DNA of 64,000 nucleotides from Anthoceros angustus (taxonomy: Eukaryota; Plantae; Anthocerotophyta): positions 1,922,001 through 1,986,000 of the forward strand of contig VJWM01000025.1 in assembly GCA_010909165.1 (NCBI GenBank). The letters are read 5' to 3'. Below the pieces are notes generated by a model. The model saw only the letters and a list, made by a program, of their open reading frames with translations. It was not told the DNA's origin and searched no databases. Positions 39,486-55,556 of this stretch are shown piece after piece. How positions within the stretch are numbered: the stretch's first letter is position 1; each line of letters opens with the position of its first letter. A program made the position numbers and the translations under genes.

Positions 39486-42400
39486 ATGGCCACAATGTGG
39501 CAACCGGACCCGTTGTGGACCCAACAAAGTGGTGTGTGTGCAGGGATTCTACGAGGAGCTCCCGCTCACCTCATGGTAGGGAATGAACCCATTGCAAACA
39601 AAGCCTCCAGGTGCAGCAGTGTAAGGAGCCCAGCACTTCCACTTCCGAGAAATTGTGTGGGTGGGGAGGGGTTTTCCAACGATGATCATTGCCAGGAGCA
39701 GGAGCACTTGTGGCAACAATTCTTTCTGGACCCTACCATGTGGTGGGACAACAGACGAGATAAGAAGAGCTTCAGTTCGCCTGACTTCCGACGCAAAGGG
39801 TCCGGCGAGGTCCTGTGGTTAAACAACATGTTTAAGCCAGCTTGGGTTGATGAGCAGCTCGTTTCCTTGGATATGCAGATGGGTCACGCTGCCTCTCCTT
39901 CCGAGTCGAGCTATCGGGATAATCCTGAACCTGGGAGGCGTGCAGAATCGGAAATAGGCTCCAGGTGCAGGAGTGTAAGGAGCCCAGCACTTCCACTTCC
40001 GGGAAAATGGGTGGGTGGGGACGGGATTTCCAACGATGGTCGTCGCCAGGAGCAGGAGCTGTTGGTGCAACAATGTTTTCTGGATCCTAACATGTGGTGG
40101 GACAACAGACGAGATAAGACGAGATCCCAATTGCCGGAATTCCGGCGTAAGAGGTACGGCGAGGTCCTGTGGTTAAACAACATGTATAAGCGAGCTTGGG
40201 TTGATGAGCAGCTCTATTCCTTGGATATGCAGATGGGTCAATGTGCCTCTCCTTCCAAGTCCAGCTCTGTGGATAAGCCTGAACCTGGCAGGCGTGCAGG
40301 ATCGGAAGTGGGCGTCGTAACAGCTGGAACCGTGAGCTTGCTATGTGAGCAGGGGAAGCTTTCTGAGGCCGTTGGAGCCCTTGAATCTCTGGCGCAGGCA
40401 GACCCTGCTATTTCCCAGTCTCTGTTTTACACTGTGCTAAAGCTGTGCACAGCTAAGAAGGATTTGGTTGTGGGGCGACGAGTTCATGATCTCACTGCCA
40501 AAATTGGGTACGAGTCGAGTGCATACTTGGGGAACCATATCTTGCGCATGTATGCATGTGGAGGTAGGCTGCAGGAGGCCATGGATGTGTTCACCAGGGT
40601 GGGCAAACCAAATGTCTTCATGTGGGTTTCCATAATCTCTGCACATGCTAAGCACGGGAAACCTAAGGAGGCCATACAACTCTACCATCAGATGCGGAGG
40701 TCAGGAGTGAAGGCGAATGGCCACGTCTTTGTAGCTGCCCTCCAGGCTTGTGCAATTGCTGCCGACTTGGAATCTGGCAAAAAAGTGCACTGTGATGTGT
40801 TGCACAGTGGCACTCCTACTGACGTGTTTGTTGGCAATTGTCTGGTGGACATGTATGCAAAATGTGGTGAACTGAAAGCTGCACGCCAGGTTTTTGAAGG
40901 CATGGCCGAAAAGGATGTGGTGACATGGACGGCGCTGATATCTGGGTATGTAAAGTGTGGTGAACTGAAAGATGCACGCCAGGTTTTTGACAGCATGAAC
41001 ACAAAGAATGTGGTGACATGGACTGCGCTGATAGCTGGGTATGCTGAGCAAGGTCTCGGACACGAGTCGCTTGTTCTGTATGGACAAATGGAGCAGGAGG
41101 GCCTCATTTTGGCGGACTATGTCACCTTTGTTTGCCTTCTGAAGGCCTGTGCAAGCACTGGTGCCTTGCAGAAAGGCAGGCAGCTGCACTCACAGATTGT
41201 TGAACGAGGACTGTTGGACAATGTAATGTTGGGCAACTGCCTGGTGGACATGTATGCAAAATGTGGTGAACTGGAAGATGCACGCCAGGTTTTTGACAGC
41301 TTGGTGACGAAGGATGTGGTCACATGGAATGCCCTGATAGCTGGGTATGCCGAGCAAGGGCTTGGCCAAGAGGCACTTGTTCTGTATGGACAAATGGAGA
41401 CGGACAGCCTCGTTTTAGCTAACCATGTTACTTTTGCTTGCCTTCTAAAGGCTTGTGCAAGCACCGGTGCTTTACAGAAGGGCAGGCAGCTGCACTCACT
41501 AATTATCGAACGGGGACTGCTGGATAATGTACTGGTGGGGAACGGCCTGGTAGACATGTATGCAAAATGTGGCAAACTGAAAGATGCACGTCAGGTTTTT
41601 GACAGCATGGCCACAAAGGATGTGGTGACATGGAATGCCCTGATATCTGGGTATGCAAAATGTGGTGAACTGAAAGATGCACGCCAGGTTTTTGACAGCA
41701 TGAACACAAAGAATGTGGTGACATGGAATGCCCTGATAGCTGGGAAGGCTCGGACATGAGGCGCTTGTTCTGTATGGACAAATGGAGCAGGAGGGCCTCA
41801 TTTTGGCTACCATGTTACTTTTGCTTGCCTTCTGAAGGCCTGTGCAAGCACTGGTGCCTTGCAGAAAGGCAGGCAGCTGCACTCACAGATTGTTGAACGA
41901 GGACTGTTGGACAATGTAATGTTGGGCAACTGCCTGGTGGACATGTATGCAAAATGTGGAGAACTGGAAGATGCACGCCTGGTTTTTGACAGCTTGGTGA
42001 CGAAGGATGTGGTCACATGGAATGCCCTGATCGCTGGGTATGCCCAGCAAGGACTTGGCCAAGAGGCACTCGTTGTGTATGGGAAAATGGAGCAGGAGGG
42101 CCTGATTTTGGCAAACCATGTTACTTTTGCTTGCCTTCTAAAGGCCTGTGCAAGCAGTGGTGCCCTACAAAAGGGCAGGCAGCTGCACTCACAGATTGTT
42201 GAAAGAGGACTACTGGATAATGTACTGGTGGGGACCTGCCTAGTGGACATGTATGCAAAATGTGGTGAACTGAAATATGCACGCCGGGTTTTTGACAGCA
42301 TGAACACAAAGAATGTGGTTACATGGAATGCCCTGATATCTGGATATGGTACATCTGATGATGGTCAGAGAGCACTAGCTTGTTTTGAGGAGATGTGTGT

Positions 42401-43229
42401 TGCCGGTATTCAGCCTGATGGTGCTACTTTTACTTGCCTTCTAGTAGCATGCAGTCATGAGGGACTAGTCCACGAGGGTCGCAAGTACTTCGATTCCATG
42501 GCTGAACAGCATGGCATCAAACCTACTATTGAGCATTACATTTGCATGATTGATCTTCTTGGGCGTGCAGGCCATTTAGATGAGGCAGAGAAGATGCTAT
42601 TGTCATGTGAGGGCCAAAGTAATGTTGTGGTCTTGACGTCTTTGTTGAATGCCTGCAAAAGTCACGGGGATATAGAGAGGGCAATGTGGTGTTTTGAAAG
42701 CATTGTCAAGCTGGACCCCCAGGAGGCGCCTGCCTACGTGCTCATGGCGAATGCCTATGCAGATGCAGGTAGGTGGACCGATGTGGACAGGATTGAAGTG
42801 CAGAGAAGGGTAGCAGGAGCTAACAAGAAACCTGCAGTGGCGACCATTGAGCTGAACAAGCAGGTACATAGATTTCTGGTGGGAGAAAAGAGAGAGGATA
42901 TTATGCTCAAGGTGGACAGCACGAATGCCCGTGTGAAGCAGGAAGGGGGCCACGTACCTCACACAAAGTTAGTGTTGAAGCCACTATGTGAGAAGGAAAA
43001 GGAAGATGTGCTTTGTGGGCATGCTGAGAAGCTAGCTCTGGCGTTTGGTCTGTTGAACAGTCCGAGTGGGACACCTCTGGTGGTAACGAAGAATCTACGC
43101 ATGTGCAGTGACTGCCACAGTTCCACGGAGATCATGTCAAGGCTTGAACAGAGAGACATTGTCGTAAGGGATGGGTACCGTGTGCATCGATTCGCAGCTG
43201 GTTCTTGCAGTTGTAAGGGTCGACCGTGA
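39486..43229 (+). CDS. 2xPDF - PLS/SS PPR array - E1 - E2 - DYW:KP (GRP-ending) protein; reading frame broken at about 41740-41810 as assembled
   Basis: Two WWDNRRDK..P[DE]FRRK..VLWLNN motifs (about 39700-39860 and 40060-40215), P-L-S-(SS) repeats, [24 protein letters not shown] and terminal CSCKGRP. There is a deletion of about 10 bp at 41744 (tatgctgagc missing) and a 1-bp loss at about 41808. Confidence 0.9.
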
Positions 43230-43419
43230 GAATAATGAAGAACTGGCCAAGGTGGTGAGTGCGTTGGTATCCTGGGCAGAGCTTGCGGCTGTTGCCCCCA
43301 AGGTGACTAGGCCGGGACCCCTCACATGGTGGGTGTCTGTCTTTGCTGCGAAGCGCATGAAGACAGGATCACCAGCTGGACTCGGATCTGGCGCTCAAGA
43401 GGCTGTGCTGGGGACCGAG

Positions 43420-54100: not shown

Positions 54101-54401
54101 ACGTCTGAAGCAGGAAGGAGGCCACTTACCTCACACTAAGTTGGTGTTGAAGCCACTGTGTGAGAAGGAAAAGGAAGATGCTCTTTGTGGGCATGCTGAG
54201 AAGCTAGCTCTGGCGTTTGGTCTGTTGAACACTCCGAGTGGGACACCTCTGGTGGTAACGAAGAATCTACGCATGTGCAGTGACTGCCACAGTTCCACGG
54301 AGATCATGTCAAGGCTTGAACAGAGAGACATTGTCGTAAGGGATGGGTACCGTGTGCATCGATTCGCAGCTGGTTTTTGCAGTTGCAAAGGTCGACCTTG
54401 A
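51153..54401 (+). CDS. PDF - PLS PPR - E1/E2 - DYW:KP(GRP) paralog; many frameshifts as assembled
   Basis: [68 protein letters not shown] fragments in several frames, and C-terminal HAEKL..CSDCH..CKGRP. Confidence 0.82.
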
Positions 54402-54567
54402 GAGTAATGACGAAGTAGCCAGTGCTCAAGTGTGTACGTCAGAGAATATTGCTTTCGGGGTGAACGTGCTTGCTGAAACATGGACATGGTTGGCTAACAC
54501 TGATCCTGGCACCTCTCATCATTACAGAGAGAATTGGAATCCAGCGTTCCAGGTGGGCGCGGCGTCT

Positions 54568-55556
54568 GCCTCGTGGACATGTATGCAAAATGTGGTGAAC
54601 TGGAAGATGCACGCCAGGTTTTTGACAGCATGAACAAAGGATGTGGTGACATGGAATGCCCTGATATCTGGGTATGGTACTTGTGATGAAGGTCACAGGC
54701 ACTAGCTTGTTTTGAGGAGATGTTAGTTGCCGGTATTCAGCCTGATGGTGCTACTTTTACTTGCCTTCTAGTAGCATGCAGTCATGAGGACTGGTCCACG
54801 ATGAGGGTCGCAAGCACTTTGATTCCATGGCTGAACAGCATGGCATCAAACCTACTATTGAGCATTACAATTGCATGATTGATCTTCTTGGGCGTGCAGG
54901 CCATTTAGATGAGGCTGAGAAGATGCTATTATCATGTGAGGACAAAGGAAATTCTGTGGGTTTAAGGTCTTTGCTCAACTCCTGCAAAAGTCACGGAGAT
55001 ATAGAGAGAGCGACTCGGAGTTTTGAAAGCCTTGTTAGGCTGGAGCCTCAGCATGCGTCGGGATATGTGCTCATGGCCAATGCCTATGCAGATGCAGGTA
55101 GGTGGACCGATGTGGACACGATTGAAACACAGAGAGTGGTAGCAGGAGCTAACAAGAAACCTGCAGTGGCGACCATTGAGGTGAATAAGCAGGTACATAG
55201 ATTTTGGTGGGAGAAAGGAGAGAGGATATTGCGCTTAAGATAGAGAGCATGAATGCACGTCTGAAGCAGGAAGGAGGCCACTTACCTCACACTAAGTTGG
55301 TGTTGAAGCCACTGTGTGAGAAGGAAAAGGAAGATGCGCTTTGTGGGCATGCTGAGAAGCTAGCTCTGGCGTTTGGTCTCTTGAACACTCCAGTGGGACA
55401 CCTCTGGTGGTAACGAAGAATCTACGCATGTGCAGTGACTGCCACAGTTCCACGGAGATCATGTCAAGGCTTGAACAGAGAGACATTGTCGTAAGGGATG
55501 GGTACCGTGTGCATCGATTCGCAGCTGGTTTTTGCAGTTGCAAAGGTCGACCTTGA
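54568..55556 (+). pseudogene. C-terminal-only PPR-DYW:KP(GRP) copy (S-P2-L2-S2-E1-E2-DYW)
   Basis: Begins at a ctgcct junction without an N-terminus. E1/E2 differ from 53420-53900, but the DYW region and about 170 bp of 3' flank are essentially identical to 53900-54570. Confidence 0.78.

Follow-up and report, generated by a model that had tools for sequence, protein, structure and literature searches.

Within the 64-kb window (the whole stretch of Anthoceros angustus DNA analyzed here) lies a young tandem array of PLS-class PPR genes of the E1-E2-DYW:KP type, with copies that are 85-94% identical in DNA, together with a diverged relative of these copies, paralogue F. The N-termini of these genes carry a PDF motif, copies of which were located by regular expression over the six-frame translation and by direct translation. 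The features of the array and of paralogue F are as follows, with the basis for each given in brackets.

39486..43229, + strand: gene A, with leader, two PDF units, PLS-type PPR tract, E1-E2-DYW:KP and GRP end (translations, Pfam, tblastn frame map)
39705-39872, + strand: PDF, gene A unit 1 (regex, translation, gapless alignment; first row of the AlphaFold model)
40059-40226, + strand: PDF, gene A unit 2 (regex, translation, gapless alignment)
41742..41830, + strand: scrambled stretch of gene A (sequence and translations)
42663..43229, + strand: E motif (~42663-42851) and DYW:KP deaminase domain (~42948-43220) of gene A (Pfam on ORF 41859-43229; an 18-residue string; GRP)
43889..44155, + strand: isolated PPR fragment between gene A and copy B (tblastn)
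44925..45937, + strand: copy B, a 5' duplicate, truncated, comprising a leader, a single PDF and, past a frameshift, ~135 aa of PPR (translation, tblastn)
45147-45314, + strand: PDF, copy B (regex, translation)
46293..49628, + strand: copy C, its N-terminal part, PDF core included, frameshifted several times (ORF list, translation, Pfam, tblastn)
~46533-46620, + strand: PDF core, copy C (regex, translation)
51153..54401, + strand: copy D, leader and PDF in frame, then frame changes, GRP end (translation, regex, tblastn)
51369-51536, + strand: PDF, copy D (regex, translation)
54561..55556, + strand: fragment E, a frameshifted 3' fragment with GRP end (regex, tblastn)
1..2268, - strand: paralogue F, with leader, one PDF, short hinge, PPR tract and E1/E2 (regex, translation; AlphaFold model of residues 60-420)
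1864-2031, - strand: PDF, paralogue F (regex, translation)

The first-pass annotation had placed the motif at four N-termini (39486, 44925, 46293 and 51153), and regex and translations recovered it at all four. Frameshifts flank the motif of copy C on either side and leave just its core, WWDNRRDK....PDFRRKG, in frame. Gene A holds a second unit, absent from that earlier list, which starts 354 nt (118 aa) after the first and is a tandem duplication. Across the five full copies, a gapless alignment over 56 residues leaves 27 columns invariant; the leader preceding the motif measures ~73 aa in the cluster copies and 79 aa in paralogue F. These leaders are rich in serine, arginine, alanine and proline, and look like organelle-targeting peptides.

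The C-terminal assignment also held: Pfam finds PPR repeats (PF01535, PF13041), the E motif (PF20431) and the DYW deaminase (PF14432) in the window proteins, and four E1-E2-DYW:KP C-termini with a GRP end are present. GRP-stop ends fall at 43229 (the stop codon of gene A being 43227-43229), 49628, 54401 and 55556, each preceded by the same 13-residue motif and by CSDCH; the deaminase domain has both HxE and CxxC (HAEK, CSDCH). In these four copies KKPAVATIE and GRP show Lys-Pro where the PG box would be and a non-DYW tripeptide at the end—KP for PG and a variable C-terminal tripeptide define the DYW:KP class (PMC11845758). The array genes belong to the class that has been put forward as U-to-C editors of organelle RNA; hornworts, lycophytes and ferns have candidate editors of this class, and engineered versions exist as well (PMC11845758, PMC9478123), and with these the array genes share PLS repeats, E1-E2, a KP deaminase with HxE and CxxC, and a GRP or other non-DYW end. 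In the descriptions examined, the published and designer proteins have no N-terminal PDF, whereas the array N-termini carry it, on copies that are broken.

The earlier description of a tandem family stands as far as the four N-termini and four C-termini go, but not as four intact genes: gene A is interrupted, B and E are partial, and C and D are frameshifted, so that in this assembly the reading frame of every cluster copy (A, B, C, D and E) is interrupted or cut short. Gene A keeps a single frame throughout, yet its scrambled stretch contains an in-frame TGA at 41757-41759 and, compared with sister repeats, apparently lacks ~10+1+1 nt; an intron at 41742-41830 was considered and rejected, because the stretch is recognizable as degraded repeat coding sequence. 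Copy B has a frameshift near 45323-45335 and no C-terminus, and its duplication is visible in the 91% match between DNA 44301-45726 and 45722-47059. Copy C shows at least three or four frame changes, with an open C-terminal ORF of 544 aa (47994-49628) that ends in GRP; the PPR tract of copy D shows at least four. Fragment E is a 1.16-kb tandem duplicate of the 3' end of copy D (DNA 53418-54574 versus 54566-55729, 94.5%).

These stops and frameshifts, along with the partial nature of B and E, make it probable that the cluster is a decaying, non-functional pseudogene array in which PDF is mere inherited baggage. The neighboring Mpp10 ORF (36567-38306) is intact, as is paralogue F, which argues that the assembly is not generally indel-ridden; however, assembly errors could arise in near-identical PLS repeats (internal repeats are 85-92% identical). 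Read data on gene A came from three RNA-like runs and one DNA-like run, as Logan unitigs of ~60 nt only; thousands of these derive from paralogues, which match them too, and the one unitig with an extra A after 41808 is accounted for equally well by a sister repeat. Broken as they are, the loci of the cluster may have no function at all. Decay of this kind concerns these copies only, however, and the PDF domain family itself is under purifying selection.

Paralogue F is the sole PDF-PPR copy in the window that reads open, its frame running from the ATG at 2268 to the window edge, with a KP box near position 108 and the DYW end outside the window. Its AlphaFold model gives a pLDDT of ~84 for PDF, ~63-66 for the hinge and >90 for the PPR tract.

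The motif is a true OSB-type PDF domain, as the first-pass annotation had proposed. Pfam has no model for it (ORFs B and D give no match there). A profile of the window copies retrieves 714 proteins at E<=1e-3 (214 at E<=1e-10) out of 1.84 billion, so the match is not a chance one. Named OSB proteins are among those retrieved—Populus OSB1 (E 4e-24) and Euphorbia OSB3 (E 2e-22), both matched at C-terminal motifs and both with an SSB-like domain. Within the 150 best matches, 75 have an SSB-like domain and 14 have PPR repeats. Among 64 PDF sequences, D, R, F and W are invariant, and W, F, P, W, K, P, D, L, W, P and V nearly so.

Structure prediction agrees with this assignment. The motif is modeled at pLDDT 90 as a module of ~56-60 aa with a predicted helix-strand-strand-strand-helix order, and a Foldseek search of AlphaFold DB Swiss-Prot gave the PDF regions of Arabidopsis OSB1-4 as its only significant matches (TM 0.73-0.87, rmsd 0.9-1.3), a comparison of predicted structures on both sides. 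OSB-family clusters were matched in the fold search as well; Foldseek against the PDB gave no solved structure, and a search of the ESM Atlas with the motif gave low-score, unrelated matches only. The order of helices and strands had prompted a dsRBD identity, which was dropped when Foldseek against the PDB gave no support and a wide VIA search reached a best Z of 3.6.

With Arabidopsis OSB1-4 (OSB2 being PTAC9), which are organellar ssDNA-binding proteins, the window proteins share a domain of ~56 aa with conserved W, F, P, W.DNR, K, PDF, LW and P.WV; the closest superposition, on OSB1 residues 184-243, has a TM of 0.87 at 44% identity for the predicted fold. The setting differs: in OSB proteins PDF is C-terminal and follows an SSB-like OB fold, whereas in the window proteins it lies N-terminal to the PPR tract. 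Pfam finds no SSB domain in the window proteins, and PPR repeats come after PDF instead, which makes them mere PDF carriers and not OSB proteins. In PPR-linked copies, R tends to replace the K of PDFRHK, and KP.WVD tends to stand where OSB has NP.WVK; the conserved aromatic and basic core is identical in the two groups.

PDF-PPR proteins are found in Ceratopteris, Adiantum, Selaginella, Diphasiastrum and Sphagnum, and Pteridium transcripts encode them too. In the first five of these genera PDF occurs on DYW-less E-class PLS proteins, many ending in E1; in Diphasiastrum it also occurs on proteins with a canonical PG box and a DYW end. The tie to DYW:KP proteins and U-to-C editing implied by the first-pass annotation is thus not borne out, since DYW-less E-class and DYW:PG proteins carry the same fusion. 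The same distribution bears on the most speculative role suggested in the first-pass annotation, in which PDF would present ssDNA to the DYW domain so that DNA bases are converted, a notion which rests solely on the co-occurrence of PDF and a deaminase fold in the cluster. We regard this as very improbable: many PDF-PPR proteins have no deaminase, the distribution of the fusion is independent of DYW, and the two domains sit at opposite ends of the protein.

The fusion is ancient and has been kept by selection, and it spans editors of the KP, PG and DYW-less E classes. On a tree of the motif, PPR-linked versus OSB-linked status requires just two changes. Among units A1, B and D the dN/dS of the motif is 0.12-0.30; gene A unit 2, at 0.6-1.07, looks to be under relaxed selection. 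The comparison of A with F gives a dN of 0.3, with saturation at synonymous sites. A word-indexed homologue search limited to the motif region, unfit as a census, returned four Adiantum-type orthologues for a fern PDF-PPR protein and nothing for paralogue F; these orthologues, of ~800 aa, retain PDF at 58-84% identity. In a small sample, the pairing was present in 0 of 33 gymnosperm PPR proteins versus 6 of 22 from Diphasiastrum. The first-pass annotation knew of no described PDF-PPR-DYW architecture, and the searchable open literature agrees: full texts in PMC open access and bioRxiv gave no description of PDF-PPR (a mention in Zaegel et al. 2006, Gerke et al. 2020 or Gutmann et al. 2020 is possible), and PPR goes unmentioned in a 2026 survey of the OSB family. 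Old and widespread in seedless plants, the pairing has apparently gone undescribed.

What might such a domain do on an editing factor? We lean slightly toward PDF being an anchor that holds single strands regardless of their sequence, next to a PPR tract that recognizes a specific one. PDF on PPR proteins would retain the single-strand nucleic-acid binding shown for the PDF of OSB1; some 10-40 residues of hinge or linker connect it to the PPR superhelix. On RNA, a PPR tract lies with its N-terminus toward the 5' end, which would place an N-terminal PDF just 5' of the recognized element; there it would add affinity and keep the strand open, as a built-in helper. The WVK to WVD substitution in PPR-linked copies is a charge change, and was counted against the anchor reading.

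The logic is comparable to that of maize PPR4, a P-class splicing factor with an N-terminal RRM followed by PPR repeats. In both, a general single-strand-binding module would lie N-terminal to a sequence-specific PPR tract; the difference is an RRM fold on a splicing factor versus the PDF fold on editing factors. MORF/RIP proteins are seed-plant editing cofactors, separate proteins that bind L motifs. They may fill the same role as PDF, making PLS editing factors bind RNA more tightly, although their fold is unrelated to PDF and there is no homology.

Two further readings draw on the biochemistry of OSB proteins. In one, also raised in the first-pass annotation, PDF is a nucleoid tether: by binding ssDNA, whether of the non-template strand, in R-loops or in replication intermediates, it would concentrate editing factors at the active organelle chromosome and allow co-transcriptional editing. 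The sole biochemical data on the domain concern ssDNA binding, and OSB1 and OSB2 prefer ssDNA over RNA (PMC6963530, PMC4166229), which favors a tether over RNA contact; the aromatic and basic core shared by PPR-linked and OSB-linked copies also speaks for a tether. A short hinge beside an RNA-binding tract would, however, expose PDF to a very high local concentration of RNA, and the change from WVK to WVD could mean altered specificity; on balance we find the tether rather unlikely. In the other, PDF is a protein-protein module that oligomerizes, or docks onto OSB-coated DNA or editosome partners, without touching nucleic acid. OSB2 is reported to be tetrameric (PMC6963530), and arrays with as many as 13 PDF domains are found, an arrangement common among interaction modules; this reading is nonetheless improbable given that the OSB1 PDF alone suffices for ssDNA binding (PMC6963530).

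A broader reading we offer tentatively, as a possibility that may well prove wrong: since before the bryophyte-vascular plant split, an OSB-type domain may have been an integral, overlooked part of some PLS-class RNA-editing factors, coupling them to the nucleoid or to unfolded nascent RNA and serving as a MORF/RIP-like helper in seedless plants. The known range of the PDF domain is widened beyond OSB proteins. The PDF-PPR pairing bears on target finding by editing factors where a lineage has hundreds to thousands of sites to edit, on whether editing is tied to the nucleoid, and on the engineering of synthetic C-to-U and U-to-C editors, to which PDF is easily added or from which it is easily removed. 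Catalogues of PPR editing factors, exhaustive as they are, have been built on the repeats and the C-terminal domains; in an N-terminal accessory domain whose nucleic-acid-binding activity is known, the plant editosome would gain a new working part.

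A PDF-type motif—the ~56-aa module of the Arabidopsis organellar ssDNA-binding proteins OSB1-4—had been reported by the first-pass annotation at four N-termini of a tandem PPR-DYW:KP array, and it is present at all four in the ORF list, the translations, and a six-frame motif scan of the window. The scan also recovered two copies missing from that earlier list: a second unit in gene A, 354 nt downstream of the first, and a copy at 2031-1864 (minus strand) in a diverged paralogue, F, near the window start. The array and its paralogue comprise the following features:

39486-43229, plus strand: gene A, in a single frame throughout, interrupted
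44925-45937, plus strand: B, a 1.4-kb duplicate of the 5' flank and first 800 nt of C, frameshifted and without a C-terminus
46293-49628, plus strand: C, N-terminal part with several frameshifts, C-terminal ORF open (544 aa)
51153-54401, plus strand: D, with at least four frame changes
54561-55556, plus strand: E, a 1.16-kb duplicate of the 3' end of D
2268 to 1, minus strand: F, open over its entire visible length

The five full motif copies give an ungapped alignment of 56 residues, 27 of which are invariant. Pfam finds PPR repeats, an E motif, and a DYW deaminase domain in the ORFs downstream of the motif, and no match on the motif itself. The KP box (KKPAVATIE), HAEK, CSDCH, and a GRP end occur at all four C-termini of the array, of which the KP type and the GRP end had been noted earlier; these ends fit the published DYW:KP definition, in which a KP pair replaces PG and the last tripeptide is variable (PMC11845758).

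The assignment of the motif to the OSB PDF domain is borne out by sequence profile, predicted fold, and fold matches. A search profile made from these five copies and run against 1.84 billion representative proteins matched 714 at E<=1e-3 (214 at E<=1e-10), including proteins named at source as OSB1 (Populus) and OSB3 (Euphorbia). Of the best 150 of these 714, 75 have an SSB-like OB domain on the N-terminal side of the motif and 14 have PPR repeats, with confirmation by Pfam. An AlphaFold2 model built from 64 diverse copies (pLDDT 90) predicts a helix, three short strands, and a helix; its sole Foldseek matches among reviewed UniProt models are Arabidopsis OSB1, OSB2, OSB3, and OSB4 (TM 0.73-0.87), each on its PDF region. 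The model also matches OSB-family entries in the AlphaFold cluster library, and fold searches including Foldseek returned no solved structure resembling it. Since they have no OB fold, the window proteins carry an OSB PDF domain but are not OSB proteins. In a model of F residues 60-420, the PDF domain is a folded module (pLDDT ~84), followed by a short low-confidence hinge and a confident PPR superhelix.

The motif's dN/dS is 0.12-0.30 among the first unit of gene A and the units of B and D, and between A and F dN is 0.3 with synonymous sites saturated; for the second unit of gene A dN/dS is 0.6-1.07, and selection there looks relaxed (all from small counts). The local array copies are mostly or all pseudogenes. 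They form a young array, 85-94% identical, as seen when gene A is mapped across it by tblastn and in a DNA self-comparison. Gene A has an in-frame TGA at 41757 within a scrambled stretch (41742-41830), where, judging from the sister repeats, ~12 nt are apparently missing at three points. Tandem units of ~300-400 nt (PLS triplets) at 85-92% DNA identity lie inside the PPR genes (40840-42360, 47245-48750, and 52120-53530), which points to recent internal repeat amplification and makes the region difficult to assemble; the breaks could still be misassembly of near-identical PLS repeats, and the public sequencing runs aligned to gene A give only ~60-nt unitigs, common to paralogues. The assembly is not generally indel-riddled, because F is intact and so is the single-exon ORF of the U3 snoRNP protein Mpp10 (579 aa, 36567-38306, plus strand, E 9e-108) adjoining the array upstream. 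Elsewhere in the window, 6440-12674 is a complex young repeat, with several 200-300-nt segments recurring at 99-100% identity at spacings of 1068, 2401, 2838, and ~3468 nt, and G+C falls to 0.33-0.40 at 28000-32000, against ~0.5-0.6 in the rest of the window.

A PDF domain followed by PPR repeats also occurs in named proteins of ferns (Ceratopteris richardii and Adiantum capillus-veneris) and lycophytes (Selaginella moellendorffii and Diphasiastrum complanatum), in transcripts of the fern Pteridium aquilinum, and in the peat moss Sphagnum, where PDF spans residues 41-99 of a PPR protein of 980 aa. In Adiantum-type orthologues (~800 aa) the domain is retained with 58-84% identity. The full-length proteins that represent ferns, lycophytes, and Sphagnum stop at the E1 motif, without a DYW domain. 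ORF 47994-49625 was compared with its 120 closest PPR relatives, eight of which carry PDF: two, from Diphasiastrum, have a PG box and CGDYW end (the canonical C-to-U type), and one, 65% identical to that ORF, has a KP box and GRP end. In this small sample PDF occurs in 6 of 22 Diphasiastrum and 0 of 33 gymnosperm proteins. A restriction of the fusion to KP-type, U-to-C editors is thus not upheld. Proteins from Sphagnum (P0305) and Diphasiastrum (P0145) and metagenome fragments (P0076 and P0149) share the E1-only end and a short sequence directly after PDF (..M/LAPGTV/SPGTL), which suggests one orthologous PDF-PPR lineage kept between moss and lycophyte. On a motif tree poorly resolved by its 64 columns, PPR-linked versus OSB-linked status needs to change only twice and shows much stronger clustering than when labels are shuffled, so the data are compatible with a single ancient fusion or very few.

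The motif is said to be confined to green plants (PMC4166229). Annotated proteins of nine tandem PDF-like repeats occur in the dinoflagellate Effrenium voratum (P0015 / P0327), and metagenome proteins have 9-11. Angiosperm protein models from Kingdonia uniflora (P0001, 1160 aa) and Coptis chinensis (P0051, 1526 aa) include one with 13 PDF repeats and another joining an OSB-like N-terminus to a kinesin motor; these may be gene-model fusions.

The identity, order, and conservation of the parts are established, and the function of PDF in PDF-PPR proteins is a prediction. The PDF of OSB1 suffices for ssDNA binding (PMC6963530), and OSB1 and OSB2 prefer ssDNA over dsDNA or RNA (PMC4166229). In the fusion, PDF would act as a sequence-independent single-strand anchor next to the sequence-specific PPR tract. 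A PPR tract lies on RNA with its N-terminus facing the RNA 5' end, which would place PDF immediately 5' of the element that the tract recognises. The RNA substrate is the slightly more likely partner, because a tethered PDF would meet a very high local RNA concentration; a serious rival reading has PDF anchor the protein on nucleoid ssDNA so that editing is co-transcriptional, as the only biochemistry on PDF/OSB points to ssDNA. A purely protein-interaction role is possible. The earlier suggestion that PDF presents DNA to the deaminase is unlikely, since proteins that lack a deaminase domain altogether commonly carry the fusion, and PDF sits at the opposite end of the protein from that domain.

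The first-pass annotation knew of no such architecture, and this stands within searchable full text: no description of a PDF-PPR fusion was found in PMC open-access or bioRxiv papers, and a phylogenetic survey from 2026 that covers 182 OSB genes nowhere mentions PPR (PMC13393729). The PDF-PPR architecture is apparently an undescribed variant combining two known modules, and its tie to U-to-C editing is not specific.
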